Assembly (NCBI GenBank): GCA_965112735.1
Contig: OZ218951.1
Location: forward strand, 4,340,001 to 4,404,000
Source: Phaeosaccion multiseriatum
Lineage: Eukaryota; Protista; Ochrophyta, other classes
Reading direction: 5' to 3'
Length of the DNA stretch: 64,000 nt
Shown here: positions 15,696 to 50,216 of the stretch, piece after piece
How positions within the stretch are numbered: the first letter of the stretch is position 1
Layout of the letters: every line of letters starts with the position of its first letter
Position numbers and translations under genes: made by a program
Notes under the pieces: model-generated
Told to the model about the DNA's origin: nothing
Databases searched by the model: none
What the model saw: the letters and a program-made list of their open reading frames with translations, nothing else

Positions 15696-15731
<36 letters not shown>

Positions 15732-22561: not shown

Positions 22562-25500
22562 ATGGTGATCATGGGCCGTGCAAAAGAGAGCGGCGAGAAG
22601 GGCGGCCCTCGTGTGACCCCGGGCGACATTGCCATTGTGGGAATGGGCTGTCGCCTTCCTGGGGGTGCCAACTCTGCCCGTGAGCTATGGGAACTGCTCT
22701 GCAGGGAGGGTAGCGGCATAACAGACCAGCCTACCGACAGGTGAGTCTTCTTGGAGACGGCCGTGTAGCTAGCGATGCGCTGCATGCGCTTGATGGCTTT
22801 GCCCCACGAGCTAAGGGTTGATACAGACAGAATCCTCGTGTCTTTGACTTTCTTGAGACTATTTCCTTGAGCTGAGCACAAGTGCCAGTCTGTTGCTGGA
22901 CTCGCTGCTGGAGCATTCGACTTGCTTCGGGCAGCAGTCCCCAGCGAGATTGGGATAAGAAGGCTCTGGGGCACTGAGTGAGGAGCGAGAGAGGGGAATC
23001 GCCGAAGGGGCGTGGTCATGGCTGGCTGGCTGCTCTTTCTCTCACTCACTCTGGCCGGCTGCTGTGTTGCCTTCAGATAGGCACACTGCCCACTTTCTTT
23101 AGAAGGTAGCTACCGAGTTCCCGACAAAGAGGGAAATTCTTACCTTATGTTTAAGGAAGCTTTCCAATCGGTCTATACGGGTTCAGGAGTGAGAAAGGGG
23201 GCCAGCCGCCCCCTCAGATCCGCCCTTATGCTACCCTTACATAACTGCCTACAGCCACAGCAAATAGTCACCTAAGTAGCCAAACCAAACACCTCCCTCC
23301 TCCGCGCCTCGCTCTCTCAGATGGGAGCCTGGGGCCCTGGACAAGCTCAAGAACGGCGGAGGCGTATACCCGACCCGGGGGGGCTTCCTACCCAACGTAG
23401 AGCTGTTCGACAACGCGTTTTTCAGCATTCCGGACACGGAGGCAGCCGCCATGGATCCTCAGCAGCGAGGTGAGCAAGGCTTCGCCGGAAAGGCGGGTCG
23501 GCGACAAGTCGGCTTTCTTTCCTGCCCCCCTTTCTTCTGCGCGTGCCAGACTTCTTGTTGTATCCCTCGTACCCTCCGAGTGCATTTCTTCAAGGAATCT
23601 GAAGACTTCTTGCGGGCTCTCCCCTCTCCCTCTTGCGTTTCTCCACTCGCGCCGGCACACGCAGTCATGCTGGAGGTGGCAGTCGAGGCCTTCCACGACG
23701 CGGGCTTCGGAAAGGAGGCTCTTGCCGGCAGCCGAACAGGTGCGTCGATGACCTCTCTAGTAGTGATGACTTCTCAGCGTTACATACTGTTTGTTTGGCG
23801 AGGTGCCAGTCCCTGCCTGCACTCTATTTCTGATGACGATAAGACCTCCAGTAGTACTGCACCACCCTACCTTTTGCCTGCGGTCCTGCTTGTTGACTGT
23901 CACATGCTCTTGTCCACGAACGGCCCAGGCGTGTTCATTGGGTGCGGCAGCGGAGACTGGACCTCGAGAATGCAGTCCCACGCTCCTGGCCCGTACGTCG
24001 CTACCGGCGCCTCGGAGGCCCTCGTGTCCAATCGGGTCTCCTTCGCTCTCGATCTGACGGGACCCTCCCAGACTGTCAACACCGCCTCGTCCTCCGCTCT
24101 CGTGGCCGTGCACCAGGCCTGCCGAGGCCTTCAGAGCGGCGATTGCGACATGGCCCTGGCTGGAGGGGTGTCCATCATGACCAGTCCCGAGGCCTGCTCC
24201 GCCATGTCCTTCCTGCACGTGCTGTCGCCTGACCAGCTGTGCATGACCTTCGACGCCTACGCCAATGGCTACGTGAGAGGAGGTGAGCAGGAATCGATGA
24301 TGTGAATGACTCATGACATGTGGGAGGAGGCTGGTTTCCGAAACGGCTTTCATCTCTTCATCCAGGCGAGTCACGGTCCCACTCATCGCTCACTTCTGTT
24401 GTCGAAATGTGTGTGTGTGTGTGTGTCTGTCTGTTTGTTTGTTTGCTTGCTTGTTTTTTTGTTTGTTTGTTTGTTTGTCTGTGGGTGAGAGCAGAGGGCT
24501 GTGGCGGTGTCGTGCTCAAGCGCCTCGCAGATGCCACAGAGGCCGATGACACCGTCTTGGCGGTGATCCGAGGCTCCTGCGTCAACCACACGGGCCTCGG
24601 CCCGACCCTCACCGCCCCCAGCGAAGCCGCGCAGCGGGCTGCGGTATTCGACGCTGTGGCGGAGGCAGGCGTCGCCCTGTCGGACGTGAGCTACGTCGAG
24701 GCGCACGGCACAGGCACGCCCCTCGGGGACAGCACGGAGTGGGCGTCCATCGCCGCTACCTACGGAGACCCCAACCTCGCGGGCGATCGCCCTCTCGTCA
24801 TCGGAGCCGTCAAGACCAACATCGGGCACGCGGAGGGCGCGGCGGGCATCGCGGGCCTCATCAAGGCTGTGCTCGTGCTCAGGCACGGCCAAGCACCCCC
24901 CAACCTCAACCTTTCCACGCTGAGCCCCGCACTCAAGACGGAGGACAACACCGCGGTACTGCCCCCCCTCGGTCGCATGACTACAATTCAGAGCCGAATC
25001 GGAGGTGCGTGAGGGTACTCTTGTTTTAAGCGTTGCTTTTGCATAAACTCATACCTCCTAGTCTGAATAGAGTCGTGAAGGGGGGAAATGGGAGGAAGAT
25101 TAGCAACGTATCATGCTTGTCCTCGGTGCCCGCCTTGCTTGAATGCTGAGTGGGACTACGCCCTCACCCAAGCGTCATCTTTCTTCCCGTGGTCATGGGT
25201 CGCCAAACAGAAATGCTTTCTTGAGTGCGCATGCACTATGGTAAATAATGCCCTGACTAATCCTCCCTCGATCCTCCCTCGTCCTCTCTCGTGCTGGTTG
25301 CTTTGCTCTCTTCTTCCCCTTGCAGCCGTCAACTCCTTTGGGTTTGGCGGCGCCAATGCCCACGTCATCCTGCAGGGGACGCCCATCCGCCCGTCTGAGA
25401 AGAGGTCCGAAGTGACACAGCCCCTCTTCAAGAACAGGAAGGCGTTCAAGTTGCTACCCGCCCTACCAACATCCGCTGGAAGCTCCTTGGCCACAGAGCT

Positions 25501-28500
25501 CCGCGGCTTCAGCCGAATCGAGCGCCACGAGAGGCTCTGTTCTATCATCACCGACATGGCTCTTTCCAGCACGGCAGGCACGGCCAGCATGGACGTGAAC
25601 AAGCCTTTCATGGAGGTTGGTGTGGACTCGTTGGCGCTCATGGAGCTGAGGCAGCGCCTGCACCTGCGCAGCGGCATTCCCGTGAGCAGTGCCGCCCTCT
25701 TCGCCCACCCCACCGTGGCGGCCTTGGCGGAGTGGTTGGACACTGCGCTTATGGAGGGGAGCGCGAGCAGCCTGCCCAGAAGGATGCCACCGTCTCAGGC
25801 GGGGAGTAGTGCCTCTGCCCCGCTTGCTGTGGTGGGCATGGCGTGTCGCTTCCCCGGAGGCGCAGACAGCCCGGAAGCTTTCTGGGCCATACTGATGAAG
25901 GCAAGGGACTGCATCAGCGCCATGCCCCCGGGAAGACTCGCTGGTGCAGGGAAGGAGTGGCACGGAGGCTTCATCGACGGAGTGGAGATGTTCGACAACG
26001 CCACGTTTGGCGTCTCCGTGGCTGAGGCCGAAGCCATGGACCCCACTCAGCGCATCATGCTCGAGGTCGGCTACGAGGCGCTGCACGAGGCAGGCTTCTC
26101 CATGGACACGCTGCGCGACAGCAACACCGGAGTGTTCGTGGGCGCCATGCAGCACGGCGACTGGGCCGCGCTCAACAAAGACGGGGCCGCCAAGACCCAC
26201 TCCATGATGGGCGAATCAGCGGGCTGCCCTGCAAACCGCCTGTCCTACGCGCTGGGCCTGCGAGGCCCGAGTATCTCCGTTGATACGCTCTGCTCTTCTT
26301 CGCTCGTTGCGCTGGACACGGCGTGTCGCTACCTTCGCTTCGGCACGTGCGACGCTGCGGTGGTGGGAGGAGTGAACCTGCTGCTCGGCTCGCGGTCCTT
26401 CGAGCAGCTCGACAACGCAGGCTTCCTGTCCAAGGACTGGTACGTCATAGATACCAGGGCCTATCTTTGGGAGTATCGAGGTGCTCTACTGCGAGTGGAG
26501 TCGTGGAACTTTTTGTTTGATAGGTAGACCACAAGCATTTTGTCGCTCTCAATGCCTTGACTTGACGTCCACCGCTCCCGTCTGTTTCGTTCTCGTACCC
26601 ACCGCAGGCGCTGCAAGACGTTCGACGTATCGGCCAACGGGTACGTCCGAGGAGAGGGCTGCGGCGCCGTGGTGCTGAAGCGGCTTGATGACGCGGAGCG
26701 CAACGGAGACAGCATTCTCGCCGTCGTGCGGGGAAGCTCCGTGAACCACAATGGGCGCTCTATGCGGCTCACAGCACCCAGTCCAGACGCACAGCAGACG
26801 CTGATTGAGGCAGCCTTGGAGGAGGCCGGCGTAGCAGGCTGTGAGGTTCACTTCGTGGAGACGCACGGCACCGGCACGGCTCTCGGAGACCCAATCGAGA
26901 TGAGCGGCCTCAAAGCCGCGTATGGAGAAGGGCGGGAGATCTCTTTCCCACTCACGGTCGGAGCCGTCAAGACCAACATTGGTCACTTGGAGGGCGCGGC
27001 AGGCATCGCCGGACTCTTGAAGACCATCCTCACATTGCAGCACAGGGCTGCTCCAGGCAACCTGCACCTCAGAAAGCTCAATCCTGAGCTTGAGGCTGAT
27101 GGATTTGCGTTATTCCCGTCCTCGCCGGGACTATCTCCACTGGGTGCCGGTGGCGAGGGACACCCTCATGACTCCGACGAGGTGCTGTACGCAGGAGTAA
27201 GCTCGTTCGGAGCAGGAGGCACCAATGCCCATGTGGTGCTGAGCAGCGCTACGCTGAGGGTGGAGGGGCAGGTTCCAAAGCAGCCAACGAGAAGTGGTGA
27301 TGCGGAGGTCGCCTCACCTACGCACGTCTTTCTCTTCACGGGGCAAGGCTCCCAGTACCTCGGAATGGGCAAAGCGCTCTACGAACAGGTTAGTTGACTC
27401 GCACCATGTTCGTCTGTCTCCGCTCTCCTCATTGCTTCTGTCGGGTTCCATCATCTCGCCCATACACCCTGTTTCTCATCTTCTTGTCTGTACGCTGTGC
27501 TCTCCTCTCTATGCTGCTCTTGTGGGGCTTCAACAGCATGACGTCTTCCGCGAAGCTGTTCACCGCTGTGATGGTCTCCTGCAGGCCCGGGCCTGGCTGG
27601 ACAAGTCCGTGGTGGAGCTCATGTACCCGGCTGCCGTTGGGGAGGAGCAGGAGGAGCGTGCACAAGCGCTACTGAAGGAGACGCGCTACTGCCAGCCGTG
27701 CCTGTTCGTGCTGGAGTACGCACTGTGCGAGCTGTGGAAGTCGAAGGGCGTGGAGCCGTCCGTGGTTATGGGACACAGTCTGGGAGAGGTGGTGGCGGCA
27801 TGCGTGGCTGGCGTCATGTCGCTGGAGGACGGGTTGATGCTGTCCGCCAAAAGAGGAGCCGCCATGCAGGCGTGCCCCGAGGGGGACGGAGTGATGGTCG
27901 CAGTACGGGCAGGCCGCGAGGCGACCGTGGCAAGCATCGACGCTGCGGGGGTGGCAGGCGAGGTGATGCTGGCGTCCTCCAACGGCCCTCAGGCCTGCGT
28001 GATCTCTGGCGCTGGCACCGCTGTGGCCAAGGTGGTGGACAGGCTTTCAGCGGGTGGGGTGGGGTGCAAGGCCTTGGAGGTGTCGCACGCCTTCCACTCC
28101 CCCCTGATGCGGCCCGCTGTGCGCGCTCTGGAGGAGGCACTGAGGCAGGTGTCGCTGAGCCCCCCACGCATCCCTCTGGTGTCCAACGTGACGGGCGAGG
28201 TGGTGAAGGCGGAGGAGGTGACGAAGCCCGACTACTGGGTGCAGCACATGCTGTCTCCGGTGCTGTTTGCGGAGAGTGTTGCCACTCTGCTGCGGGAGAT
28301 CCCTGGAGCCGCGGTGCGAGTGGTAGAGATAGGGCCAAGCCCTGTGCTGACCAACATAGCGCGGCAATGCGCGGGGGAGAGGTCGGGCGTGATGTGGCAG
28401 CCCTCCATGCAGCAGCAGCGCGAGGAGAGCGACGCCACCTCCTTCGACTCGGCGGTGGCCGCAGTGCTGGGCAAGCCCCTTCCTCTGTTCCCATCGCGCA

Positions 28501-31500
28501 AGGCCTTTCGATGGTACACACCACAAACCACAGCTGTCAAGGAGGATGACCACGGTCCGCTCTATGTGCTTGACTGGCACGTGCTTGAGGTGCCGACGTC
28601 TTCGCAGCAGGCTTTGCCAACCGACAGCGCCCCGTGGCTCGTGGTTCTCCCCAAGGGGGCCACAGAGGAGCACACATCGAGCGCCCACGGAGCCTTGGAT
28701 GCTGTCCGAAGCGCAGCGGAGACATGCAGTATAGAGATGCGTGTGGTGGAGGCGATCACTTTGCGTGAGCCGCTGCGCGGCTCCCATCTCTTCTACTTGA
28801 CATCAGCAACGAGCCCAGCGGCTGAGGGGGCAAGTAACTTTGTGCAAACTGTACAGCATTTAGGCGGAGTCGACTCAGTGATGCCGGTGACCGTGGTGAC
28901 AACGGGCGTATACAGCGGTGTGGGCTGGCAGAGCAGCTGGGCAGTGGGGCTGGTGAGAAGCGTACGTCTCGAGCGGGGCGACGTCGTCGTGAACCACGTC
29001 GACCTTGCCACTGCCATGGCTGAGCCTTCTGAGGACGCTCGATCTGGAGTAGACGACACGCATGCTCAAGCTGCCTCCCAGGCTATGATGCTGTCTTCGA
29101 CTCCACCTGCCGGAGGGCGAGGTATGGATCTGCTGGTTCGAGGATGTGAAATCCTTTCTCCGAGGCTGGTGCCGAGCTCATTGAGCCTAAGCTCAGCACG
29201 AGAGGATGGCGTTCCTTGCAAAGAGGACGGGACGTACTTAATCAGCGGTGGGCTCGGGGGCCTTGGTCTGGTGACGGCAAAGCACTTGGTTTCCAGGGGC
29301 GCCCGGCACCTGCTCCTCCTGTCTCGACGCGGCCGAGCGGCTGAGGAGGTTTCAGAGCTTTGGCAAGCGCTGCAGAGTATGGAAGGCGTCATCGCCTTGG
29401 CCGTGGCCTGCGATGTGTCGGACATGAGACAGCTTCGAGCTGCTGTAGGAACCGCTGTGGAGGGGCTGCCTCCCATTCGGGGTGTGATTCACGCAGCGGG
29501 AGTGAGCGGCGCAAAGGGAATGATATCGGGCGAGTCTGGAGAGAATCTGCAGAAGGTTTTCGCCGCCAAGGTCCAAGGGGGGTGGAATCTCCACACGCTC
29601 TGCCTTGAGTGGGCGGCGAGCAGCAGGGAGGAGGTCGACTTTTTCGTCTCGTACTCCTCGACTTCCGCTTTTCTCGGCCTTTCCAGTCAAAGCGCCTATG
29701 CCGGGGCCAACGCTGCTTTGGACGGGCTGATGCGGTACCGCTGGAGCCAGCTTGGCTTGCCTGGTTCCAGCGTGCAATGGGGGCCCTGGGGCGACGTGGG
29801 CATGGCTGCGCGGTCCGGAATGGTGTCGAAAGCCGCGGAGATGACTGGCGTTGGCCTCATATCCCCGACGCTCGGCATGGAGGCCTTGGATGCGGTCCTT
29901 GTAAGCCAGACGCAAACCAACGCGCAGGAGGTGGCCGTGATGCCGGGCATGAGGTGGGAAAGGTTCAGAGCGAGCCTGGACCCTGTGCATCGCGATTTCC
30001 TCGGGCAACTGGAGGACAGGAGGCGGGGTGGCAGAGAGTCAAACAGCCCCAACAGAGTCAACGCCGAGGTGAGGGAAGAACTGCTGCGCATGTCGGAGTC
30101 AGCACGGCGGGAGAGCATCGAGCATGTCCTGACGGACATGGCGGTCGAGTGCATTGGTGACGACGCCACTGTCAAAGCAACAAGGCCCTTGATGGAGGCC
30201 GGACTTGACTCACTAGCATCTGTGGAGTTCCGCGGGCGGATTGAGGCCTGGAGCGGTGTTCCTGTCTCGAATAGCGCCTTCTTCTCGTATCCATCGGTGG
30301 CAGTACTGGCCGCGTGGCTCGAGGCTCAGATTCTGGAGGCGCCGGATGCTCATGTAAGAGGTGACGGGGTGCTGCTGAGGCGGCAATCGTCCTCGGACTC
30401 TCGAGCCCCCATCGCCGTAGTGAGTATGGCGTGTCGCTTCCCCGGTGGAGCCAACAGCCCTGAGCAGCTGTGGTCCGTACTGTGCGAGGGCAGGGACTGC
30501 ATCACGGCAGCGCCGCATGGCAGGTGGGAGAGCAAGGCGGGCGATGCCGAGCTGCAGGGAGGGTTCATCGAGGGTGTGGAGATGTTCGACAATGCCTTCT
30601 TTGGCATCAGTGCTCCTGAGGCAGAGGCAATGGACCCCAACCAGCGCATCATGCTGGAGGTAGCCTTCGAGGCCTTGCATAGTGCGGGAGAGAGCAAGAG
30701 CAGCCTTCGGGGTAGCAACACTGGGGTGTTCGTGGGCTTATCGGACACGGACTGGGGATTTGTGGCAGGAGGAGATGCCGCTGAGGGTGCCTACGGTGGT
30801 ATGGGCCTGACGGCTTCGAACATTGCTAATCGCGTGTCCTACACTCTGGGCCTCTGCGGTCCCAGCGCGCTGCTGCAGACAGTCTGCTCGTCGTCTTTGG
30901 TGGCCCTGGACGCTGCCTGCAGCAACCTCCGCCTGGGCAAGTGCGACTCGGCGGTGGTCGGTGGCGTGAACCTACTGCTCGGGAAGAGCGCCTTTCAGTC
31001 CTTGACTGCGGGGACATTCCTCTCCTCCGACGGGTAAGTGGCGCGAGCTGCGCCACACAGCATTGCATTGCACAGCATTGCATTGCACAGCATTCTTTTC
31101 TTCTGGGCTCATTCTCCCTCTCTGGGGGCTCTCCTTGTCCTGCTCTGCTCACACTCTGAACTACTCATCACTGTCCTTTGTGCTTGGCCGACTTTCGGGG
31201 CCGAAGAGCACTCTTCTAACGTCAGCTTTGTACATTTCTTCCACCAACAACATGCACTGCCATATCTCTCCTTTGAACCTTCTCAGGCGCTGCAAGACGT
31301 TCGACGCCTCGGCCAACGGATACGTGCGGGGTGAGGGGTGCGGTGCCGTCGTGCTGAAGCCCCTGGACGACGCCCTCGCTGCGGGAGACAATGTCCTGGC
31401 CGTGATTGAGGGCTGTGCCGTGAACCACAATGGGGCCAGTGCCCGCCTGACGGCCCCCAGCCCTGCGGCCCAGCGAAGGCTCATCGAGGCCGCGCTGAGT

Positions 31501-34500
31501 GAGGCCGGTCGGGAGGGATCCGAGGTGCGCATCGTGGAGGCGCACGGCACAGGAACCTCGCTCGGCGACCCCATCGAAATGAGCGCTCTCAAGGCCACGT
31601 ACGGGAAGAACCGTGACGAGTCTTTCCCGTTGGTGGTGGGTGCGGTGAAGACCAACATCGGCCACTTGGAGGGTGCGGCGGGCCTTGCGGGGCTCATCAA
31701 GGCCGTCTTGATGCTGCAGCACCGCGCCGTGCCCGCCAACCTCCACCTCGAGACCATCAACCCGGAGCTGGACATGGACGGTTTCCACGTGCGGCTCCCG
31801 GAGGTGATGGTGCAGCTGGAGGATGAGGGAGACGTGTTGGTGGGCGTGAGCTCGTTCGGGGCGGGAGGCACGAATGCGCATGTGCTGTTGAGGAGCCATG
31901 GGGACAAGAGGGAGGGCTCGACACGCGCTGCTCATGCCCCTCGTCATCATGCAGAGACTCCGGTGGGCTTCTTGTTCACGGGACAGGGCTCGCAATACGT
32001 GGGCATGGGCAGGGAGCTCTATGAGGAGGAGGCCGTGTTTCACGAGATTGTGGAACGGTGCAGTGGACTGCTCATGAAGCGGTCCTGGCTGGACAAGTCC
32101 GTGGTGGAGCTCATGTACCCGGCTGCCGTTGGGGAGGAGCAGGAGGAGCGTGCACAAGCGCTACTGAAGGAGACGCACTACTGCCAGCCGTGTCTGTTTG
32201 TGCTGGAGTACGCACTGTGCGAGCTGTGGAAGTCAAAGGGCGTGGAGCCGTCCGTGGTGATGGGCCACAGTCTGGGAGAGGTGGTGGCGGCGTGCGTGGC
32301 TGGCGTCATGTCGCTGGAGGACGGGTTGATGCTGTCCGCCAAGAGAGGAGCCGCCATGCAAGCGTGCCCCGAGGGGGACGGAGTGATGGTCGCAGTACGG
32401 GCAGGCCGCGAGGCGACCGTGGCAAGCATCGACGCTGCGGGGGTAGCAGGCGAGGTGGTGCTGGCGTCGTCCAACGGCCCTCAGGCCTGCGTGATCTCTG
32501 GCGCTGGCACCGCTGTGGCCAAGGTGGTGGACAGGCTTTCAGCAGATGGGGTGGGGTGCAAGGCCTTGGAGGTGTCGCACGCCTTCCACTCCCCCCTGAT
32601 GAAGCCCGCTGTGCGCGCTCTGGAGGAGGCACTGAGGCAGGTGTCGCTGAGTCCCCCGCGCATCCCGCTGGTGTCCAACGTGACGGGTGAGGTGGTGAAG
32701 GCGGAGGAGGTGACGAAGCCCGACTACTGGGTGGAGCACATGCTCTCTCCGGTGCTGTTTGCGGAGGGCATCCACGCGCTGGTGGACAACTTCATGGAGG
32801 ATGGGCAGGGTCTGAATCTTGTCGAGCTGGGGCCCAATCCAGTGCTGAGCAACATGGGAACCAAGTGCCAGAGTCGAGAGGGGCTGGCCTGGATACCCTC
32901 CTTTACGCGCGAACAGAAGGCCGATGAGTCGTTTGGCGAGGCGCTGGGCAGAGTAGCCGGGCCAGAGCACCCCCAACTCTTCCCAACACGCCGGTCGTTT
33001 CGCTGGTACACGCCTCCGCTGGCATTCTTTTCGAGTGGTCAGCTGTCCCAAGAGGGAGAAGGGGTCCGGCTCTCGAGCCCTTTTTCTCCTCACCTGAAGG
33101 ACCTCCTCAAGGACCATGCCGTGAACAAGGTGGTGATCATTCCGGGGGTGACGTACATCGAGGTGGGCGTCGTCGCTGCTCTTGGAGGGACACAGCTCGG
33201 GGCACAGCAGCAGGTAGTCCTGCAAGGCGCCAACTTTGTGGTTCCGTTGGAGGTGGAGGGTGTCCAGCAGACTGGCGCGGCCAAAGCGCACAGCCTCAAC
33301 ACAATTGTCTGTGGCGGCCTGAGTACCCTGCACGGGGGAGATGGAAGCATGCAGTTTTTCGGAGGTGCCGAGGGCGACCGCGGCACGACCGCGAGGATGG
33401 CCCAGGTGTCTGTCACGGAGCGAGCGGAGCCGCGTGACCCCCTCGATGTAGAGGATATCAAGGGACGCGTAGGGACAGTCGATATCGCGTGGAGTTTGTA
33501 CAAGGCAATGGCGGATGCCAATTTCAATTATGGCCCTCGCTTTGAGCGGAATGCGCACATGTTCGCTAATGACGGAGAGGTGTTGTCGATAGTGCGTGCT
33601 CTCGACGCGGAGCTGTGCGAGCCATGGGAGGTGGCGGGGTTTGCAGTCCACCCTGCGGTGCTCGACAATGCGACTCACTCCATCCTACACGCAATCCCAC
33701 AGCAGCTGCTGAAAGCGAGTGGCAGAGCTCCATTCCTTCCCGTTGGCTTCGACGAGGTTGTCGTCTTTGGCGGCATTAGAGGAGAGAGGGTGTGGGTGCA
33801 CACAAGATTCATCGAAGTGGAGGAAGGGGGAAACAGCATCAAGTATGACATCAAGATTGCTGATTTCGAGAGCAAGCAGATTCTTGTGGAGATGCGGGGA
33901 TTCCGCGTGCAGCGAGCGAGAGGCTTCGCCCGCTCCAACCCACTGCGTCGCGCCATGTACACGCTGGAATGGGAGGCCACTGAGTCTCACTTGCCCGTAG
34001 AGCTGCCTCCACATGACCCTGAGGCAGCGCGGCAACGATGGCTGGTGGCTATTGCTCAAGAGGAGGGGGAGAGTGAGCCTGCTATCATTGCAGCAGTGCG
34101 GCGCTCTGTTCCAGCGGGTGTGGACTTGCGCACTCGGTACGGAGGAGGGACGGACGGCTCTTGGGATGGTGATGCGCTTCTTCTTGGAGAGGCCGAGTGG
34201 TCTCGAGTCTTGTACGTGCTCATCCCCGGGGATGGGGACGGCAAAGATGAAGCACAAGGGGTCCAGCTGGCACGAGCGGCCTTCGCCCTCATGGCCCTAC
34301 TCAGGCGCCTGCCCACTGCCTCGAGTGTACCGCTGACTATCTTGACGAGGGGCGTCCAAAGTGGCGAGGACTGGCGTCACAGCTGGGTGACTGGGCTGGT
34401 GCGGACTGCGAGGATGGAGCACCCCTCCATGCTCATTGGTGTGGTGGACCTTACCGACAAGGAGACGGAGGACAGCGAGCTTGTTTTAAGCTTGGCCATG

Positions 34501-37500: not shown

Positions 37501-40500
37501 TCGCTGGTCACGAACCCTACTTACCCTGAACCATCGCTTCAACCTCTTTGCCAGTCGCATGGCCTCTTTCGCGGCGTCTGCAGACGGCTACGTCAGGGCG
37601 GAGGGATGTGGAGTGGTCGTCCTGAAGCGGCTCGAGGATGCTCAGGGAAGCAATGACAACATTTTGGGCGTCATCGAAGGGTGTGCTACCAATCACAATG
37701 GCGAGATGATGAAGATGGGCGCGCCCAGCGGCGCCGCACAGGAGGACGTCATGAGGAAGGCCTTGGCAGACGCTGGTGCCTCCCCTCGCGACGTCGTTTT
37801 CATCGAAGGGCACGGGACAGGCTCAATGGCGGGTGATATCATTGAGATGAACGCGATTAAGGCAGTGTACGCGGCTGCGGAGGACGAAGTGAATTCGACG
37901 GTGGCACCACCCCTTGTAGTCGGTGTGGTCAAGACCAACATTGGTCACATGGAGGGAGCTTCCAGCATGGGCCAGCTCATCAAAGCGCTCTTGGTCCTTG
38001 GAAAGAACTTCGTGCCTCGCAATCTGCACCAGGAGGTGGTCAGTCCCCGCATTGTGCGACATCTCCAGGGCACCCGTATTGTGCTCGCCAGGACGCCTTC
38101 TGCTCTCTCTGTGTCGCCCTCCGAGGAGCCCCCCCCTGCCGCACGCCTTGCCGCTGTTCACTCCTACGGCATTGGGGGCACCAATGCGCACTGTGTTCTC
38201 AGCGGGTGGAAGCCGTTCGGAAGCAAAACCACTCCCGACGGAATGAACGGCCGAATGCTTGCGGGGCAGTCCCGATTTCCGGCACGCATGCCAAATGACG
38301 TGCAGCAGCAGGAGGAGACACCCGTCTCACGCCTTTGGCCTCCCAGGCTGGCTTCTTCTACGCCTCGCACTGGAAGCATTTCCGCCGTTGTCGAGAGTGT
38401 GCAGTCTGAGAAAAAGGACCACCATCCTGTGGGCGTCGCGTCAGCGCCCCCTTCCAAGGGTAGGGAGCGGACGGCAGCAGACGGAGGAGGGGAGGCCTTC
38501 AAGCTCCGCAAGGCAGGCTCTCCAGATGACGGGGAGGGGGGAGGGGACATGAAGTCTCTGCCAGTACTCCGTATAAAAGGCGTGGCCGCAGCTGCTGGGG
38601 CTTCTCCTCGCGCTCCTTTGCTGGCGAGGGCGCAGCAGGTTGCGACTGAGCTTGGCGACAAGCCCTTTGCATTTTGGTATGATGGCAAGGGCCGGGATGC
38701 GGAGAGGTACACGTTCAAGCGTATGTGGGATGAGGTAAGGAGTCGCAGGAGGCATGGCGACCGATTCGTAAGCGGTGACTTTGATGGTGCCTCGCTTGAC
38801 TTGCCGCGTTGATCCTCTTCCCCCCTTCCCCCCTTCCGGCAATCTTGACGGCGAGGAGGGGCTAACCAGGGCTTTGTGCCTGTCCTCCTTCTTTCCCCCC
38901 GTTTTACCACCTGTTCAGGCGGGCAAGATCGCGTACATGCTGCGCGAAGAGTGGGGCGTGCCCAAGGGAGCCATGGTGGTGCTGTGCTACGGGCCGGGCA
39001 TGCACTTCTTCGCGGCCTTCCTGGGCTGCCTGAGAGCGGGCGTGGTGGCTGTGATGGTGTACCCGCCCGCCCCTCCCCTGTCCAAGTCCCTGCCCAAGAT
39101 GAGCAAGATCGTGGCGGACTGCAAGCCCCTGCTGTGCCTCACCAACTCCAAGATAGCGGCTTTGCGCAAAGTGGACAGGGCCAATCCGCTCTCTGACTCG
39201 GGCAAGCTGTGGCCGGAGGCCCTCGACTTCAAGGCCACAGATGGAGGGCTGCTGAAGAGCTTCTTTTCCTCGTCCTCTGCCTCGTCGTCGAGGAGCTTCG
39301 ACGAGCCGAGCGTGGCCGAAGAGGACCTGGCCTTCCTGCAGTACACCAGCGGCTCCACTGGCGATCCAAAGGGCGTCATGGTGACCTTCGGTGCCCTCAT
39401 GGCCAACGTGTACCTCCTGACCAGCCACCGAACAGGCATGGTCAAGTGGGCCCGGCGAGAGAAGAAGGATAACCATTGGGCTGATTATGAGGCACCTGTT
39501 GACCATGCACCTCGAGGGGCGGGTCAGGGAGGGGGGAGCGCTGCCGGTCAGGAAGTGATCACCTTGTCGTTGACCGGCTTCTCGTGGCTGCCTCAATACC
39601 ATGTGAGTGAGGGCGTTGACTGACCGACTGACTTGACTGAAGACGTGAATAAGTGCGTTAGCGAGTGGGTGGGTGGGTGAATGAGTGCGAAGGAGAGTGA
39701 GAGAGGGAGAGAGCAAATCAGCGAGTGAGAGAGGGATCGAGTGACTCGGTAAGCGAGCGAGGGAGTGAGTGCGAGATGAGTGAGGCTGAGCACGGCCGAG
39801 AGAGAGAGAGACCAAGGGGGGGGGGGAAGGGTCCATCACTTGACTTCGGTTCGGCAATGATGGAGCGGGGTGTCGTTCGTTTTCCTCGCATGTGAAGCAA
39901 GAGCATGGTCTGACGCCAACCTCGCCGCTGTGTATGCTCACTGACTGTCCCCACGCCCCTCTGTACCGCAGGATATGGTCCTTGTGGTGGGCCTTGTGGG
40001 CCCTTTCCTGACGGGCATGACTATGCACTACATGTCCCCCGTGAGCTTCATCAAGCGGCCCCTGCTGTGGCTGGAGCTCATATCCAGGCACCGCGTGGAC
40101 TGGTCCATTGCCCCTGACTTCGCGTACGCCCTCTGCGCCCGCTACATGGCAAAGGTGCGCGGTACTCGCAAGGAGCCTGTGCTGGACTTGTCTCATGTGG
40201 TGTCCTTGTGCAGTTCAGCCGAGCCGATTCGGAGAGAGACCATTGAGAGGTTCGAAGAAGCGTTCCGTTCACATGGCCTCCCAGACAGGTATGAGGGTGC
40301 AGTGGCTAGGCGGGCATTGTGTGATTCTAACCATAAAAACCCTCCGCAGTACCTGGCTGCTCATCAATTCTTTTTCTTTCCCCACTCTCTGCTTCTCGCG
40401 GCTCAAGAAGGGGGAAATGCTGTCTCCCTGGTTAAGCTGCGCCAGACCAATGCTATCCCTGACACTCCTGTCACCTCCTTCGCTCAGGTGGTTCTCGTCG

Positions 40501-43500
40501 GCCTACGGCTTAGCTGAGCATGTGGTTTTAGGTACGTAATCGGCCGGCCATTTCGGGGTGGCGGGCGAGGTGCAACGACGCTCGGCCCTCGCTTCCATAA
40601 TTCTTCTTATTCTGTCTTGCGTCCCTCTCTTCCTTGTTGGGTGGTGCACAGCTTGCTCGATCGACTCTCTGCACAGATCCTCCGCGAGACCAGAACTCAC
40701 CAGCGTCGGCTTCCCGAGCGACAGAGCGGACTTAGCGGACTTTCGAATCGTCAATCCGGACACTATGATCGAGGTCAGTGAAGCCGGAGCGACGGGAGAG
40801 ATCTGGGTTTGCTCGCCCTCCGTCACCGCCGGATACTGGGGCAAGCCGGAGCTGTCGGAGGAGACGTTCGGTGCCAGACTCGCCCTCCCCGATGGTGATG
40901 GCATCTCGCGTCGCCGCCGGTACCTGCGGACGGGGGACCTTGGCTTCGTGGAGGAGGGGCTGCTGTACATCTGCGGCCGCATAAAGGACCTCATCATCCT
41001 CAACGGGGTCAACCACTATCCGCAGGACGTCGAGTTCGCCGTGCAAGAGGCGTCCGACGCCATTCGGCAGGGCTGCGTGGCGGCCTTCTCCTCCGACGAG
41101 ACGGAAGGGGATGGCATGCTGGAGGTGGTGTTCGAGATCCGCCGGGAGCGAGAGGGCGAGGCCCAGGCAGTGATGGAGGCCGCTCAAGCCGCCCTATCGT
41201 CTTCTTTTGGCCGTCGAGCGGCCAAGGTGGTGGCCATAAAGCAGAAGACCGTCCCCAAGACCACAAGCGGCAAGATCCGACGGCGGGCCACCAGACAGGC
41301 CCTTCACAGTGGCGGTCTGCAAGTTGTCCACGAGCTGTGTGAGGACACCGCAAGTATCCAAGACGGGGCGGCGGACGGCGCCAAGCGGTCTGATGCCTCC
41401 GTTGGTGGCAATGGCACACCAGCGCCGAGGAAATCAAAAGCGCGGTTGGCAGGAGCAGCAGCAACGGGCGCGAAGAGCAAAAGGGCCCACTACATGAAGC
41501 GAATGGCGTGCCCGCGATGGCCACCATGGAGGGAATGGGCAAGGCTGCTCGAGAGGCGCTCATCCTCGAACGAGTTGTCGAGTCTGCCAGAGACGCGTCC
41601 GGCAACCCCGGCCTGCGGCCCACGGACCGCTTCATGGACGCAGGTCTCTCGTCCGTCGCGATGGCCGAGCTGGCGGTGACTCTGGAGGACTTTCTTGATA
41701 GCGGCATGGCGGGGGGAGGGGGCTTTGAGATGGAGACCACAGACTTCTTTGACTTCCCCACACCTGCGCTGCTGGCAGCGCATCTCGAGGAAGTGCTCTT
41801 TGGGCGAGGAGAGAGAAGCGCGCGTGGCTCTGCGTCGTCGCTTCCCCTCACTCCGCTGCTTGAGCCTGCAGCTGCCGACGGGGACATTGCGATAGTTGGG
41901 ATGTCATGCCGCTTCCCGGGGGGCTGCAACAGCCCGGAAGATCTCTGGGCCACGCTGTGCGCCGAGCAGGACTGCGTCTCCGAAGCGCCGGTCGAGCGAG
42001 GGTTGGGGCCCGGCATTCAAGGTGAGAGAGGGGCTCTTGCTTCCCCACTGCTCGGCGCTCCTCCTCCTCCTCCTCCTCCTCGACACGGAAGTGGCTGATC
42101 CTTGTCACCTCATCTCCATCTCCTCCTCCATGTCTCTCTCTCGTTTTCCCTCTCCTTCTCTTCTTGAACAGGTGGCTTTATCAATGGGGTTGACAAGTTC
42201 GACAACGCCTTCTTCGGCATCTCTGAGGCGGAGGCGGAAGCGCTCGACCCCAGCCAGCGCATCATGCTGGAGACTGCGTACGAGGCCCTTTACAGGGCGG
42301 GCTTCGACCAAGGGCTGGAGAGTCTGCATGGCCAGGATGTCGGGGTGTTCATTGGCAAGTCCGGAGCAGGAGAGTGGAGCGTGTTGCAGCAGGAGAGAGG
42401 CGCAAAGCAAAGCACATACTCCCTCGTCGGGGCAAGCACCGCGTGCGTAGCGGGGCGTGTATCGCACACCTTGGGCCTCACGGGCACTTGTTTCACCATA
42501 GACGCGGGATGCCCTTCCGCCTTGATCGCACTTGAGACAGCTTGCAACACCCTCATGTTGGGGAAATGCAGCGGCGCTGTGGTGGGGGGCGTCAACCTTC
42601 TGCAGCACCGCCAGACTTTCGGAGCACTCGACAAGGCAGGATTTTTGTCGAAATACGGGTGAGTTTGACCTTCGCCTCGCCACATCTTTCGAATGACTAC
42701 GCTTTCCCCTTTCCTGAGTACGCTATATCTCACTCCGGCCTCACTCTTGCTCCCTCTTAACCCTCTATCCCGATCTCTCGTCAGACGCTGCAAATCCTTC
42801 GATGTCAAGGCGGACGGATACGTCCGAGCCGAGGGTTGCGGAGCGGTGGTGCTGAAGCGCTCGGCGGATGCGAAGCGCGATGGCGACCGCATCCTTGCCA
42901 CCATCAAGGCGGCAGCGGTGAGCCACAATGGGGTCAGCAGCTCCCTGTCCGCGCCGAAAGGCGTGGCGCAGCAGAGTGTGGCTGCGGCTGCTCTCTCTCG
43001 CGCGGGCTACAGGGGCAGTGAAGTGTCCTACGTGGAGGCACACGCTACGGCCACCATCACGGGAGACGCCATCGAGATGGGTAAGGAGTTGGTGATACAG
43101 CTCCTTTGAGGGCCTGCTGCATTGTCGGCCCCCGCGATCCTCTTTGCTCGGTGTCGTGGAGTAGTTACGTAGCTACCGGAGCTGTTGCGATTGAAATAAT
43201 AATGAGCGCCCCCCTCCCACCTCCTCTCCCCTCCCCTCCGCTGCGTTGCACAGGCGCTCTGAAGGCCGTGTATGCAGGCGGTCGCCCCCCTCAGTCTCCT
43301 CTGGTGGTGGGCACCGTCAAGACCACCCTGGGCCACATGGAGGGAGCCTCGGGTATGGCGCAGCTCATAAAGGCCATCTTGGTGCTCCAGCATGGGGCAG
43401 CGCCTCCCAACCTTCACCTCAAGGAGGTCAATCCCATGCTGAAGCTCGAGGGGCTGCCCGTTGTTCTTCCCACGCAGATGACTGCGTTGGCGGCATGCTG

Positions 43501-46500
43501 CGGCGACAGGGGGGAGAGCTTGCTGGTTGTGGGCATCAACTCTTTTGGGTTGGGTGGATTCAATGCCCACATCATTCTAGAGGGGCGGCAGCAGAGCCCC
43601 TCCACGGCTTCCACTACGCGACAGGAAAAGGTCTGGGGAGGATTTCAGACGCAGCACTCTTTCCCGCTCCCCCATCATGCTCTGGGCGCTGCTGGTGCGG
43701 CTGCTACGAAGCGTCTCGGCGCACCGGGGCAGCTAAACGAGCTTCAAGCAATGACACCCTCGCAGAGGGAGGCGTCTGTGAGGCAAATCGTGAGGGCCGC
43801 CGTAGAGAGCGTCTGCAGCACCCCAGAGGTTGCTACAGACCCAAACGCTAACGTACTTGAGGCGCTGGGACACGACTCCACCGCAATCGCAGAGGTGGTG
43901 GAGCGAGTGATCGACACTATTGAGGGAGACCAAGGTGATGAGAAGCATACGGCTGGTGAGGGCGAGGGCCTTCGATCCGTTATCACTCCTGCAACCCTCT
44001 ACGATATGCCAACATTGGATGCGATTGCGAGCTTCATCAGCGAGGCATGCCTGACGACACACGGGGGCACTGCTCGAGCTCCAGGAAAGTTGGGCACCTT
44101 GCGGGCCTTGCCCGCCGCAACGAGAGAGGAGGAAGTACGTCTTATTGTGCTGGACGCCCTCGAGCAGCAAGTCGCTGGCCAAAGCCCATCAGATGGCGGC
44201 CCAGAGACCGCGCTGGATCTGACCGCCCACGATCTGGATATATTGGAGGTATTGGCTGACGACTCACAGGCTGCCGCAGAGTTTGTCGTGCGGGTTGTCA
44301 ATGCTATCGAGGGAAGAGACGAGAGCACAAGTGCTCACCTGGAGAGCGATGGTGGCGACGAAGCCAATGGTCTCCTGTCTGTCGTGACACCCGCCGCGCT
44401 CTTTGACATGCCAACCGTGGATGCGTTTTCGAGCTTCGTCAGCGAGGCGTGCCTGACGCACGGGGACACTGCTGGCGCGGATCATGCACATGAGACGCGT
44501 TCCTCGAGCTGGGCAGTGAGGAATTCCGATCGGCAGTGGCAGGCCTCCGACGCACACATGCCCGCGGAGCGCAAGGCGGAATTGGGCTACACAGCTCTCA
44601 AGCTGGTGACTGTGGCAGCGGCTCAGATACTGGGCCTGCTCGCTGTTGTGTTTGTCGCTTCTGTGCTGCTGAGCAAAGTCCCCTTGAGCGTCGGGAGCCT
44701 TGTGTCTGGCTTTCCGGTGCTGAACACCTTCCAGGTACGGCAATGCACTGCGGTGTTGGTGGCGGAGAGAGGGAGTTGGCGGCAGATTGGAGCAAGGGAT
44801 CACCGCGCACATGCGGTCTTGCAGTCTCTCGTGAGGCTCTCATACGCTTCCGTCGCCCCTCTTTCTGCCCTACACGGGGCCATGATGTATTGCCGACGAT
44901 AACACTCCTTGCTTTTCCCGCCCTCGCTCGTGCTCTCTCTCTCTCATGTACCACTGTAGACGTTGAAGCTACTTGAGTTCCAAGAAGATTTGACGAGAGC
45001 GGCGACTGCGGAGGTCCTCGGACGAAATCCTCTCTTCCAAAACGAGTACCTCAACATAGTACTCAGCGGCATGCTCGGTGCAGCAGGCTTCTTGCTCGCC
45101 GCAATGCTCTCCGCACCTCTGGTCAAGTGGGGCGTGGTGGGCCGCTACAAAGCAGGGGTGTTCAAGGTGTACAGCTGGTACCATCTGCGCTGGTAAGCAT
45201 GCATTCTTGCATTATTTTGCAATATTTTCCTTCTGCTGTGGTCATCCATCATCCCCTGGTACTATCGTATGAGCTTCGCAGGCGAGTGGTCATAACGTCA
45301 AGCCTCGACACCTGATTTTCCGCTCCCCCCCATTCGTTCTGATCACAGCTGGCTAGTGGACCTCTACCTTGACTACTTCTTCTACCCTGTAGTCTTCTTG
45401 CTCGTCCGGGATTCCGTCGTGCTGGTCCCACTCTATCGCCTCATGGGAGCGAAGATCGGCCACGGAACGGACTTGACAGGGGTGAGTTCTGGGCTTAGAC
45501 TGCATCCTTTCCATCTCCGCGTTCTTGCTCGTTTCAAGTGCGTACTCACCAGCCACCACACCTCCTGATGCTCTCATTTGCCATCCCACAGGTGCGTCTG
45601 AGTGAGTTTGATCTCGTCAGTATCGGCGAGAACTGCTCTGTTGCCGGCCGGGCCATCATCACTCCCAAGTCCCATATCGGAGGCATGAGGCTTCAATACG
45701 AAAAGGTACTGTGTGTGTGTGCGCTTCTGGACATGGAACGAGGCCCATGTTCAAGAAACCTGGTGCACTACCGATCACTAACCCTCTCTTCTGTGCCATT
45801 CTCGTTCTTGCTTAATACCGCAGGTCGTCATCGGCTCAGACTGCGAACTGGGAATAGGAAGTGTCGTGCATGGGGGCAGCGAGCTTGAGGATGGCGTGCG
45901 TCTTCACGTGAGAGCAACTGTGCCTCCCGGTACCCGACTCGCAGGCCCTCGAGTGTACCAAGGCAGCCCGGCGACGGTGGTGCCAAGAAGGAGTATGCCC
46001 GCGCCCGTTGTGCCGGTGGACCAGTGGATGTCGCTGAAGAAAGGCGCCTTCTTTTCATTCTTTGCCGGGCTCGCGGTGCTTCCAGGAGCGGTAGCTTCAA
46101 TCGCGATTCACCTCAACGCTTCCAACGGAATCAACGCGGGTGCGTGCATCTGCTGCACGACTTTTTTTTGCCAGTAGAACCACCGGTATTGCTCCCCCCC
46201 CGCCCCCCTTCTGATGCGCCCTTTCCCTCCTCTCTTCATGCTTTTCCCCTCTTCAGGGCGATACACCGGGATTCTGCTGCTCTTCCTTTATATCTCGCTG
46301 ATTAATGTGAGTACAAATGGCGAGGAGCTGCGAACTGAACGCGACACACACACGCGCCCTTAACTTACTACTACCTGCCTCCCCTTCCTCTTTGCTCGCA
46401 CAAGGTCGTGACCGTTTGCACCACCATTTTGCTGAAATGGGTGCTTGTGGGGAAGCTGAGGCGGGGCGTTATCGTGGCAGAAATGGGAGACTGGGCGGTG

Positions 46501-47967
46501 CTCTGCAGGGAGACTGCCAATCGCCTCAACGGACTGGCAGAGCTGATTCTTGTCCGCTTCTTTCATTTTGCAGAGGGTGCTGTGATCTACTACAGACTGC
46601 TCGGAGCATCCATTCACCACACCGCCATACTCGGAGGCGCTGTTGTCTTGTCTGACCCAGACACTATTGAGATGAGGGCGCTGTCTTTCGTTGGCGGGGC
46701 CGGGGCTCTTTTGACAGAAACCTCCGATGGTGTGCTTGAAGGATGCACGCTTGAACGAGGAGCTACCGTCGGTGACATGGGCATTGTAGGCGCAGGGAGT
46801 CGCCTGGAGACGCTGGCGTTACTGACTTCCAGATCTTGGCTCGGTGAACGAATGGTGATGCCGCCGAATTCCACAGGAAGGGGAATTCCCGCCGGGGTTG
46901 TTGTCGTTGCACCCTCCTCCACTGGGGGGAAGAAGGCTGGAGATGGCGTCAAGAGACTTCAGCAGAAGGCGCCGAGAGGCCGCGTATTGAACCTCGTTCC
47001 AGGCACCCAGTTCCTTACCCAGATCGTGATCATGTTTGCGCATTTGCTTCGCCTTTTCGGAAGCGCTGTTCTTGCCTATGAGTTCCTCGACCTCTTCCAA
47101 GAGCCAATCGATGAATGGTACGCCGCGAGGGTCCTTGAAAGCAGTATTGCCACCACAGTGCAAGACGTGTGGACGAGATTCGACACGCAGACGCTCCTTC
47201 TCCCCGTGGCGTACCTCCTCTACCTAGCGGGAGGCCTTCTGTCGTCGCTCGCTGTGACGGTGAGTGCGATGCTGCAATTGCCGGTCTGACACTCGTCGCA
47301 CTTCTTGTCATGTATATATGTACTATCTCTCTCTCCCGTGAAACGAATTACCTGGCGCGGCCTTTGCTTCAACCCCTACCCACCCGTCAACCCTCCCTCT
47401 CTTCTGCTCCGCGTTATCATGCAGAGGCTCTTCGGAATGTTTCCAGAAGGGTCCATAAATTCGTTTAGCTGGGAGGATCTGCGGTACAAAGCAGTATTCC
47501 TGTTCGACGTCATGGGGAGGCCGCTTACATCCTGGATGTGGGGAACTCCCATCTGGCCGGCCTATCTTAACCTCCAGGGGGCGGATGTGAGCACTTCAAG
47601 CTATATCGAGACTCATGCCATGTTTGACCCCAGCTTCCTCACCGTAGGGGATGGGGTCACTATTGCCAAAGGAGCGTGTCTCAGTCCTCACACAATTCTG
47701 GGCAACGAGACCGAATTGCTGCCCATCCACATTGGCCATTCTGTGGTTCTGGGCGTGGAGAGCCGAATGGTGGGGGGTGGCGTTGCGAAGCCGGGGACCA
47801 TTGTTGGCGACAACTCGCGTCCAGGCAGGGGTCAGGTTCTTCGCCCCCCCCGGTCTGCTTCCGTAGGCCATGCTGGAGGAGAAGAAGGACGGAACAGGGA
47901 GGGCACATGGCACTTCGCGGGGGTGCCCGTGAAGCCCTTCAAGGCGACGCCTTATGGAGATTGCTGA
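22562..47967 (+). CDS. Giant modular type I PKS / FAAL / Pls-like membrane megasynthase (~24 exons, ~7,000 aa), with an apparent frameshift near 41390-41500
   Basis: Five KS, two AT, one DH, one ER, two KR, six ACP-like domains, one fatty acyl-AMP ligase and three TM+LbH repeats, read from spliced ORFs. 23 GT-AG introns are phase-consistent. KS4-FAAL, ACP4-KS5 and KS5-ACP-ACP-TM junctions each lie inside single exons. Confidence 0.9.
22622..25750 (+). other. PKS loading module: KS with active Cys->Ser (KS-S) + ACP, no AT
   Basis: DIAIVGMGCRLPGG; TVNTASSSAL (TCG at 24087-24089); HGTGTPLGD; NIGHAEGAAG; NSFGFGGANAH; then directly ACP FMEVGVDSLALMEL...HPTVAALAEWL. Confidence 0.9.
25820..30335 (+). 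other. PKS module 1: KS-AT(malonyl)-KR-ACP
   Basis: VDTLCSSS, HGTGT, NIGHLEG; AT GQGSQ, GHSLGE, VSHAFHS; KR GGLGGLG...YSS...QSAYAGAN; ACP GLDSL. No DH or ER. Confidence 0.9.
27592..32767 (+). repeat. Near-identical ~680-bp direct repeat: AT1 core (27592-28275) and AT2 core (32084-32767)
   Basis: By-eye alignment from CCTGGCTGGACAAGTCCGTGG to GTGCTGTTTGCGGAG shows only ~20-25 mostly synonymous differences. Confidence 0.95.
30405..36690 (+). other. PKS module 2: KS-AT(malonyl)-DH-ER-KR-ACP (fully reducing)
   Basis: LQTVCSSS, HGTGT; GHSLGE, HAFH; DH LKDHAVNKVVIIPG...HPAVLDNATH; ER GLNFRDVL, LIHAAAGGVG; KR GGLGALG, HAAGVLDD (B-type), GQANYAAAN; ACP GLDSL. Confidence 0.92.
36770..38205 (+). other. 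AT-less KS (KS4)
   Basis: IAVVGMACRFPS, VDTACSSS, EGHGTGSMAGD, NIGHMEGASSMG, HSYGIGGTNAH. No AT or ACP before the FAAL. Confidence 0.88.
38610..41310 (+). other. Internal fatty acyl-AMP ligase (FAAL)-type adenylation domain
   Basis: AFLGCLRAGVVAVMVYPP, LAFLQYTSGSTGDPKGVM, SWLPQYHDM, FIKRPLLWL, APDFAYALC, AEPIR, YGLAEH, GEIWV, YLRTGDLGF, GRIKDLIILNGVNHYPQDVE, PKTTSGKIRR. Confidence 0.92.
41530..44460 (+). other. ACP (GLSS) - atypical AT-less KS5 - tandem divergent ACPs (GHDS, ADDS)
   Basis: FMDAGLSSVAMAEL...DFPTPALLAAHL; DIAIVGMSCRFPGG, IDAGCPSAL, EAHATATITGD, TLGHMEG, NSFGLGGFNAH; LEALGHDSTAIAE...DMPTLDAIASFI; LEVLADDSQAAAE...DMPTVDAFSSFV. Confidence 0.85.
44580..47967 (+). other. Pls/PosA-type NRPS terminal domain: three repeats of TM helices + hexapeptide left-handed beta-helix
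   Basis: Repeat 1: LVKWGVVGRYKAG..SWYHLR..YRLMGAKIG..DLVSIGENCSV..IGSDCELGIGSVV. Repeat 2: LLKWVLVGKLRRG..YYRLLGASI..DPDTIE..LERGATVG. Repeat 3: WGTPIWPAYLNLQGADV..DPSFLTVGDGVTI..IHIGHSVVLG..WHFAGVP. Confidence 0.85.
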
Positions 47968-50145: not shown

Positions 50146-50184
50146 TCAACCCTTGCCCGTTCTATTCTTCTTTTGCGCGAGGGC

Positions 50185-50216
<32 letters not shown>

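Follow-up and report, generated by a model that had tools for sequence, protein, structure and literature searches.

Product release by the giant polyketide synthases (PKSs) of algae is largely unknown, and most of these enzymes carry no recognisable release domain. How a finished chain might leave such a synthase is the question raised by one gene of the alga Phaeosaccion multiseriatum (Ochrophyta), located in a 64,000-nucleotide stretch of contig OZ218951.1 (GenBank assembly GCA_965112735.1, positions 4,340,001 to 4,404,000 of the forward strand; hereafter the window, in whose numbering all positions are given). In the exact position of a thioesterase (TE), the predicted protein carries a domain hitherto known solely from polycation synthetases of bacteria and fungi, represented by Pls and PosA, and this domain keeps the invariant histidine of its family. 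Should it be an acyltransferase, it would give polyketides and fatty acids a new way of leaving their synthase at membranes; should it be a polymerase, it would be a candidate for making resistant aliphatic wall polymers, for which the biosynthetic route is unsolved. The histidine, His6813, and the didomain formed by the last carrier region (ACP5) and the terminus provide concrete targets. The reading favoured here is a membrane-anchored type I PKS/fatty-acid megasynthase with two entry points, encoded by a single spliced nuclear gene, whose chain is released by acyl transfer from the Pls/PosA-type domain to a membrane acceptor; in our judgement it has an even chance of being right.

Long stop-free stretches in changing frames, on the + strand from 22.5 to 48.0 kb, form the pattern of a spliced eukaryotic gene. 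The gene model was obtained by enumerating frame-compatible GT-AG introns and picking those that restored domain continuity, while the domain order was determined by Pfam and NCBIfam scans of the stop-free + strand pieces.

22562-47967, + strand: whole coding region, 25 exons and 24 introns, 6,904 amino acids (aa), from frame-compatible GT-AG sites and domain continuity

Between the first ATG at 22562 and the stop codon at 47965-47967, the spliced exons form a single open frame. The GT-AG introns measure 96-580 nt each, have donors of the GTGAG, GTAAG, GTACG or GTGCG type, and differ from the exons in GC content (0.546 vs 0.620). The encoded order is ketosynthase (KS, with the active-site Cys replaced by Ser)-acyl carrier protein (ACP), KS-acyltransferase (AT)-ketoreductase (KR)-ACP, KS-AT-dehydratase (DH)-enoylreductase (ER)-KR-ACP, KS, fatty acyl-AMP ligase (FAAL)-ACP, KS and two divergent carrier-like repeats, followed by six transmembrane (TM) helices alternating with three left-handed beta-helix (LbH) domains. 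This architecture, which an initial annotation had proposed from the DNA, is confirmed: the domain order was reproduced at the same coordinates, and the start and end of the model equal those given earlier. The absence of a TE, reductase or condensation (C) domain was likewise borne out, with no Pfam or NCBIfam match to any of them across all 6,904 aa. A PKS with a Pls-type release domain is undescribed in the literature searched, and the claimed novelty of the arrangement holds to that extent. These searches turned up no characterised synthase with the same architecture; those on TIGR02353, on MpACOS18/ACOS18 and on PKS with poly-lysine synthetase and alga returned nothing, and those on Pls-type or PosA-like returned unrelated topics only. 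Individually, both parts appear to be of known kinds.

Judged by sequence, topology and predicted fold, the terminus is a real but distant Pls/PosA homologue that lies outside the curated equivalog TIGR02353, and the earlier match to Pls is upheld at all three levels. Its parts are as follows.

44603-47964, + strand: Pls/PosA-type terminal domain, from phmmer, a bacterial profile, hydropathy, AlphaFold2 (AF2) models and a Swiss-Prot fold match
44603-44659, + strand: TM1, from hydropathy, as are the other five helices
45056-45112, + strand: TM2
45113-46051, + strand: soluble domain C1
46052-46108, + strand: TM3
46265-46419, + strand: TM4
46420-47022, + strand: soluble domain C2
47023-47079, + strand: TM5
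47194-47250, + strand: TM6
47251-47964, + strand: soluble domain C3
47689-47691, + strand: His6813 in C3, candidate catalytic base, one of two invariant columns in a 66-sequence C3 alignment

Seven introns split this domain; its unspliced pieces match hexapeptide repeats, and single exons match TIGR02353 weakly, on three pieces (E 7e-4, 1e-4 and 2e-7; 18, 20.7 and 29.9 bits). Once spliced, residues 6081-6904 score 156 bits in phmmer to a protein that itself reaches 635 bits on TIGR02353, and 145 bits on our own profile of 61 bacterial Pls/PosA terminal domains, on which other eukaryotic members score 137-223 bits and true bacterial members 490-890 bits. The TIGR02353 cut-off of 423 bits is not reached, as judged from the single-exon scans and from the spliced domain on the bacterial profile. 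Identity to bacterial members is about 20-28%, and the three internal repeats fall out of register in whole-domain alignments of the terminus; each of the three repeats matches the family unit.

Hydropathy places the six TM helices in three pairs (aa 6114, 6190, 6394, 6426, 6646 and 6703), giving the order 2TM-C1-2TM-C2-2TM-C3, and the six TM helices and three LbH domains of the ~700-aa family layout are all present. The same layout has been published for Pls and PosA (PMC8117764, PMC8506220, PMC10522769). The AF2 models, which cover exon 24 (predicted local distance difference test, pLDDT, 80.6) and exon 25 (pLDDT 82.9), consist of helices followed by a left-handed beta-helix. The best Swiss-Prot match of the exon-24 model is PosA, the delta-poly-L-ornithine synthetase (residues 679-839, E 4e-8, root-mean-square deviation 3.0 A over 171 residues). 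The C3 model resembles maltose/galactoside O-acetyltransferases (TM-score ~0.5), and the C3 profile matches LacA and the acyl-ACP-dependent LpxA/LpxD at ~1e-7. A sequence search found no PDB structure of a Pls-type terminal domain; Patel and Gulick likewise report no solved structure; the AlphaFold model that they describe has six bent helices, and its three beta-helices pack in the manner of a sugar-nucleotide acyltransferase trimer (PMC10522769).

The conservation of C3 directs attention to one residue. Across its 66-sequence alignment only two columns are invariant, a Gly and the His of the family motif QTHLFEDR, and both are present here (G6776 and H6813), with the motif reading SPHTILGN in the algal protein. 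His6813 would correspond to the catalytic His of LacA/Maa, an equation with which the profile ranges are compatible (1kqa residues 48-183 vs profile 29-156). C1 is the best-kept repeat and retains the K-W...G, R-x-W and G-A-x-x-G motifs.

Upstream of the terminus lies a block that begins with fatty-acid activation.

38549-41337, + strand: FAAL-type adenylating domain in four exons, from AMP-binding and a DIP2-like AMP domain
41547-41804, + strand: ACP4, GLSS motif, PP-binding E 2e-6
41832-43633, + strand: KS5, AT-less, from Pfam; motifs DAGCPS, HATAT and TLGH
43736-44458, + strand: two divergent carrier-like repeats, ACP5a at 43736-44053 (GHDS) and ACP5b at 44096-44458 (ADDS), from borderline PP-binding, mutual identity and hhalign

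Fatty-acid--AMP ligases are the best NCBIfam families for the adenylating domain, in agreement with its annotation as a FAAL. Its C-terminal exon scores 157 bits on PRK05850 and 131-151 bits on the other named FAAL families (PRK12476, FadD21/32/28), followed at ~112 bits by both PRK09192 (fatty acyl-AMP ligase) and PRK07768 (long-chain-fatty-acid--CoA ligase), with other CoA ligases lower; the domain is thus nearer to FAAL than to acyl-CoA synthetase families, and it has its own carrier, ACP4, behind it. Because FAAL-ACP4-KS5 is collinear with the first domains, FAAL-ACP-KS, of a partial PKS from Chrysoparadoxa australica (43% identity over ~1,000 residues), and because ACP4 and the start of KS5 align to Pks13 positions 32-140, the mid-line FAAL is best regarded as an additional, ordinary site of fatty-acyl entry, a loading unit fused behind a first PKS block. 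The carriers after KS5 are less distinct. ACP5a matches PP-binding at E 0.0014 and 19.3 bits, under the cut-off of 20.8, and ACP5b has no Pfam match; the two are 50% identical, and hhalign against ACP1-4 (E 0.003) places GHDS and ADDS on the phosphopantetheine serine and 'DMPT' on the helix-IV 'xPT' motif. Of the ACP-ACP pair annotated after KS5, the two repeats and the register of their Ser motifs therefore stand, but recognition at the Pfam cut-off does not. No match was found between ACP5a or ACP5b and the carriers of other Pls-like proteins.

The first PKS block occupies the N-terminal half of the gene.

22562-25400, + strand: KS1, loading-type ketosynthase with active-site Cys replaced by Ser, five exons, from Pfam ketoacyl-synt and Ketoacyl-synt_C
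25586-25843, + strand: ACP1, PP-binding E 7e-12, GVDSL motif
25820-30347, + strand: module 2, KS2-AT1-KR1-ACP2, from Pfam KS, Acyl_transf_1, KR and PP-binding
30408-36690, + strand: module 3, KS3-AT2-DH-ER-KR2-ACP3, from Pfam KS, AT, PS-DH, ADH_zinc_N, KR and PP-binding
36760-38221, + strand: KS4, without its own AT or ACP, from Pfam; motifs TACSS, HGTGS and NIGH

The hallmarks of a modular type I PKS (KS triad, AT GHSxG, ACP serine and reductive cofactor motifs) are found, and a canonical release domain is not. In KS1, the motif NTASSSA has Ser188 (24087-24089) in place of the active-site Cys, with HGTGT and NIGH retained. The Cys-His-His triads of KS2, KS3, KS4 and KS5 are intact, with altered neighbours of the catalytic residues in KS5; similar motif changes in the terminal KS domains of algal PKSs were noted by Shelest et al. 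2015 (PMC4661987). KS1, KS4 and KS5 lack their own AT. AT1 and AT2 both contain GHSLGE and the malonyl-type HAFH, and module 3 carries DHAVNKVVIIPG in the DH, HAAAGGVG in the ER and LDD in KR2; this reductive module shares 34-40% identity with PKSs of bacteria and Chrysoparadoxa. Since AT1 and AT2 (27340-28600 vs 31972-32923) are 81% identical, including the 19-residue identical block VVMGHSLGEVVAACVAGVM, while the flanking KS2 and KS3 reach 65.5%, a recent duplication or gene conversion of the AT is suggested. A phase-2 intron interrupts the identical codon in KS2, KS3, KS4 and KS5 (FLSxDG^RCKxF; donors 26440, 31034, 37401 and 42659), from which it appears that these modules were duplicated within a eukaryotic genome that already had the intron; judged from the DNA, a recent bacterial transfer or contamination is not their origin. 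The intron pattern of KS1 differs from that of KS2-KS5.

In the proposed mechanism, block A, comprising KS(Ser)-ACP, KS-AT-KR-ACP, KS-AT-DH-ER-KR-ACP and KS4, would use malonyl units to make a partly reduced chain, either short or lengthened iteratively. Block B, comprising FAAL-ACP4-KS5 and the two carrier-like repeats, would start a chain from a fatty-acyl primer, in the manner of FadD32/Pks13: the FAAL would adenylate a fatty acid and load it onto ACP4, and KS5 would take the fatty acyl group from ACP4 and condense it with a unit on the downstream carriers, whose loading would need either a cis AT of this protein or an AT acting in trans. Release of the chain would then fall to the C-terminal Pls/PosA-type domain instead of a thioesterase. 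Its six membrane helices would carry the three beta-helix domains packed as a pseudo-trimer, in which His6813 would serve as general base while the acyl group moves from its carrier to an amine or hydroxyl on a membrane acceptor. In the mechanism published for Pls and PosA, the terminal domain takes its donor as a thioester held on the carrier, and the acceptor is free (PMC8506220, PMC8117764, PMC10522769). We infer the release by acyl transfer, what KS4 and KS5 do, the nature of the acceptor and any contribution of the two blocks to a common product, whereas the domains and their order, their fusion in shared exons, the homology and topology of the terminus and the retained His are shown by the sequence. 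Other proposals of the initial annotation, namely a convergent chemistry of two arms, an (omega-1)-hydroxy chain, iterative use of module 3 and a polymerising or exporting terminus, found no support in the analysis.

Known systems can be set beside different parts of this protein. Pls of Streptomyces albulus and PosA of Acinetobacter baumannii (TIGR02353) possess a homologous C-terminal domain with the same six-TM/three-beta-helix order, predicted fold and C3 His, which also stands directly behind a carrier in the TE or C position. However, their donor is an aminoacyl group on a peptidyl carrier protein (PCP), supplied by an adenylation (A) domain, whereas the algal donor would be an acyl- or polyketidyl-ACP from the PKS/FAAL. 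The A domain and PCP found directly upstream in polycation synthetases are replaced here by a KS and carrier-like repeats, and the sole adenylating domain is of the FAAL type. The algal terminus also lacks E-D-R, has a degenerate C2 and is encoded in a eukaryotic gene with introns. In the FadD32/Pks13 system of mycobacterial mycolic condensation, a KS is supplied by an ACP that has received its fatty acid from a FAAL, as in block B, and the product of Pks13 is released by transfer to the acceptor trehalose at the membrane. Block B differs in having no AT or TE and no sign of a carboxyacyl partner, and the release domain is unrelated to the Pks13 TE. LpxA/LpxD and sugar O-acetyltransferases share the beta-helix fold, and their trimeric packing is mimicked here by three repeats in one chain; LpxA/LpxD use acyl-ACP donors, but they are soluble homotrimers without TM helices and their relationship to the algal terminus is distant.

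Algal multimodular PKSs (PMC4661987) and PKS-Clade II of Nannochloropsis, described by Balzano et al. 2019 as having AMP-ligase, ACP, KS, AT and KR domains plus TM helices (PMC6872974), are intron-bearing giants that show module duplication, lost ATs and a terminal KS with altered HGTGT, as seen here. A Pls-type terminus, present in the Phaeosaccion protein, is described in neither study. Additionally, uncharacterised eukaryotic proteins join a FAAL, one or two carriers and a Pls-like domain: Aureoumbra lagunensis A0A7S3K042, Chrysophaeum taylorii CTAYLR_009920, Marchantia MpACOS18, Cryptomeria LOC131036185 and Adiantum GOP47_0027675. The combination of a DIP2-type FAAL, carrier(s) and a Pls-like membrane domain in one chain is also found here, and the FAALs are of the same type: the best relative is the Aureoumbra FAAL-Pls-like protein (368 bits), followed by the full-length plant proteins (258-279 bits), with bacterial A domains much farther. 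These relatives lack a KS, whereas the Phaeosaccion protein has KS5 and two odd carriers inserted between ACP4 and the terminus, and a three-module PKS in front. In their Pls-like domains, however, they come no nearer to the Phaeosaccion terminus than bacterial proteins do (59-83 vs 100-156 bits). With the FAAL-ACP-KS of Chrysoparadoxa as query, no FAAL-PKS protein with a hexapeptide end was found among the top 120. The pelagophyte and Chrysoparadoxa matches are in keeping with an ochrophyte source.

Several points weigh against release by acyl transfer to a membrane acceptor, some concerning the function of the terminus and others, set out further below, the integrity of the gene. Acyl transfer to an acceptor is argued wholly by analogy, because characterised family members with an acyl in place of an aminoacyl donor are lacking. 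Where the 61 bacterial A-T-Pls proteins have E-D-R behind the His, with 98-100% conservation, the algal protein reads L-G-N, C2 is without several near-invariant residues, and 40 of the 137 columns with >=90% bacterial conservation are kept. The last two carriers are barely recognisable and only partly confirmed. Among 1.84 billion representatives, phmmer found no close relative of exon 24 (19 matches, best E 1e-9, no self match), and an Atlas search for relatives of the terminus gave family-level leads only. Strong divergence, with the loss of many family-conserved residues, especially in C2 and at the E-D-R of C3, would suit a Pls-like end that mainly tethers the protein to the membrane or acts as a scaffold and catalyses little or nothing, while a separate thioesterase, acyltransferase or reductase releases the chain. 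We consider this unlikely: both universally invariant C3 positions are kept, His included, C1 retains its motifs, and the other eukaryotic members, which keep 36-42 of the 137 columns, have diverged just as far yet are conserved across pelagophytes and land plants; moreover, no release enzyme lies nearby, although clustering would not be expected in a eukaryote. The loss of the acidic pair by the His argues, weakly, against a cationic amino-acid acceptor. It also bears on a further proposal, favoured in the initial annotation, that the domain is an iterative lipid polymerase using the hydroxyl of a free hydroxy-acyl chain as acceptor and the next carrier-bound hydroxy-acyl chain as donor, so that the product would be a wall polymer of algaenan type, a polyester or an estolide. 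Every family member characterised so far polymerises iteratively (PMC8117764, PMC10522769), the KR-only module 2 would leave a hydroxyl on the chain, and the Nannochloropsis AMP-ACP-KS-AT-KR PKSs with TM helices are dark-induced alongside long-chain hydroxy acids and diols, the building blocks of algaenan (PMC6872974). However, those TM helices may be unrelated to a Pls-like domain, no feature of the Phaeosaccion protein points to iteration, the acidic E-D that invariably follows the catalytic His in polycation synthetases is absent, and C2 is degenerate, which together leave a polymerase quite unlikely. Very unlikely is the fuller scenario in which the terminus repeatedly esterifies carrier-bound hydroxy-acyl chains, made by the PKS and/or brought by the FAAL, to a free chain that lengthens, building and perhaps extruding an algaenan/cutin-type polyester, and in which the pelagophyte and early land-plant FAAL-ACP-Pls-like relatives do likewise.

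Release by acyl transfer from a single megasynthase, the reading we favour, also depends on the locus being one gene. The PKS/FAAL/Pls-like fusion is solid at the DNA level, because two exons each span a key junction: exon 10 (37555-38734) contains the C-terminal half of KS4, the linker and the first FAAL residues, and exon 18 (43254-44734) extends from the C-terminal portion of KS5 through the two carrier repeats into the terminal domain, including TM1. One position between them is problematic.

41339-41499, + strand: frame change from frame 0 to frame 2 in the FAAL-ACP4 linker; provisional GTGAGG...AAG intron, GC 0.63, exon-like

No convincing intron was found at this frame change, where GTGAGG...AAG is the sole canonical option, and a codon-usage scan traced the coding signal in frame 0 to ~41390 and in frame 2 from ~41420 with no non-coding gap. 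We read the change at ~41.39-41.44 kb as either an assembly error of 1 nt or an intron of very small size, the former being plausible because of the homopolymer runs AAAA, GGG and CCC at the site, but it may be a real lesion. Transcript support was not obtained either: four sequencing runs with 43.0-48.0 kb cover the introns at exon-like depth and show no splice joints, and are therefore DNA, while an RNA-Seq-restricted library search listed no run. A split or damaged locus, in which the frameshift ends the KS1...FAAL protein at the frame-0 stop at 41677-41679 and leaves ACP4-KS5-carriers-Pls-like as a separate product or a decaying pseudogene, would account for the direct passage of coding potential from frame to frame, for the Kozak-like GCCACCATGG at 41520-41529 in the downstream frame and for the missing RNA. 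We nevertheless hold it to be improbable, considering, besides the homopolymer runs, that the 11 exons further downstream, joined at canonical splice sites, keep the frame open, that the FAAL and its ACP form one unit in every relative, and that synonymous changes are in excess among the downstream variants. In 4.2 kb of exons at the 3' end, the DNA runs contain 16 synonymous and 17 non-synonymous variants, a ratio of non-synonymous to synonymous rates (dN/dS) of roughly 0.3; this suggests constraint on the 3' exons, with variants that could come from alleles or close paralogues.

The same runs show local clusters of variants. Within 41 nt of the TM5-TM6 loop (47123-47163) there are six non-synonymous changes, one synonymous change in the codon of the last of the six and one more synonymous change, and the 110-nt intron at 45482-45591 contains seven variants. 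They may stem from heterozygosity, from a mixture of strains or from a paralogue of nearly the same sequence.

Among the plant relatives, the Cryptomeria, Marchantia (MpACOS18) and Adiantum proteins are ~2,200-2,470 aa long and combine an N-terminal flavin amine oxidase with the FAAL, carrier(s) and Pls-like domain; no paper on them was found. There are two PP-binding stretches in the Cryptomeria and Adiantum proteins and one in that of Marchantia, and the Cryptomeria protein contains a catalase-like insert.

Around the gene, no biosynthetic neighbours, release enzyme included, were recognised nearby. An upstream extension through the 260-codon open frame at 21581-22360 was rejected, as this frame has no family match, is of low complexity and has a non-coding look, and the long open frame at 50149-52422 on the - strand has no Pfam match. 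The sole neighbour of recognisable family is the open frame at 15338-17224 on the - strand, which contains a VPS9 domain (E 2e-8). Within the gene itself, intron 4 (24330-24480) contains TG/TTTG microsatellite-like sequence that translates as an open frame.

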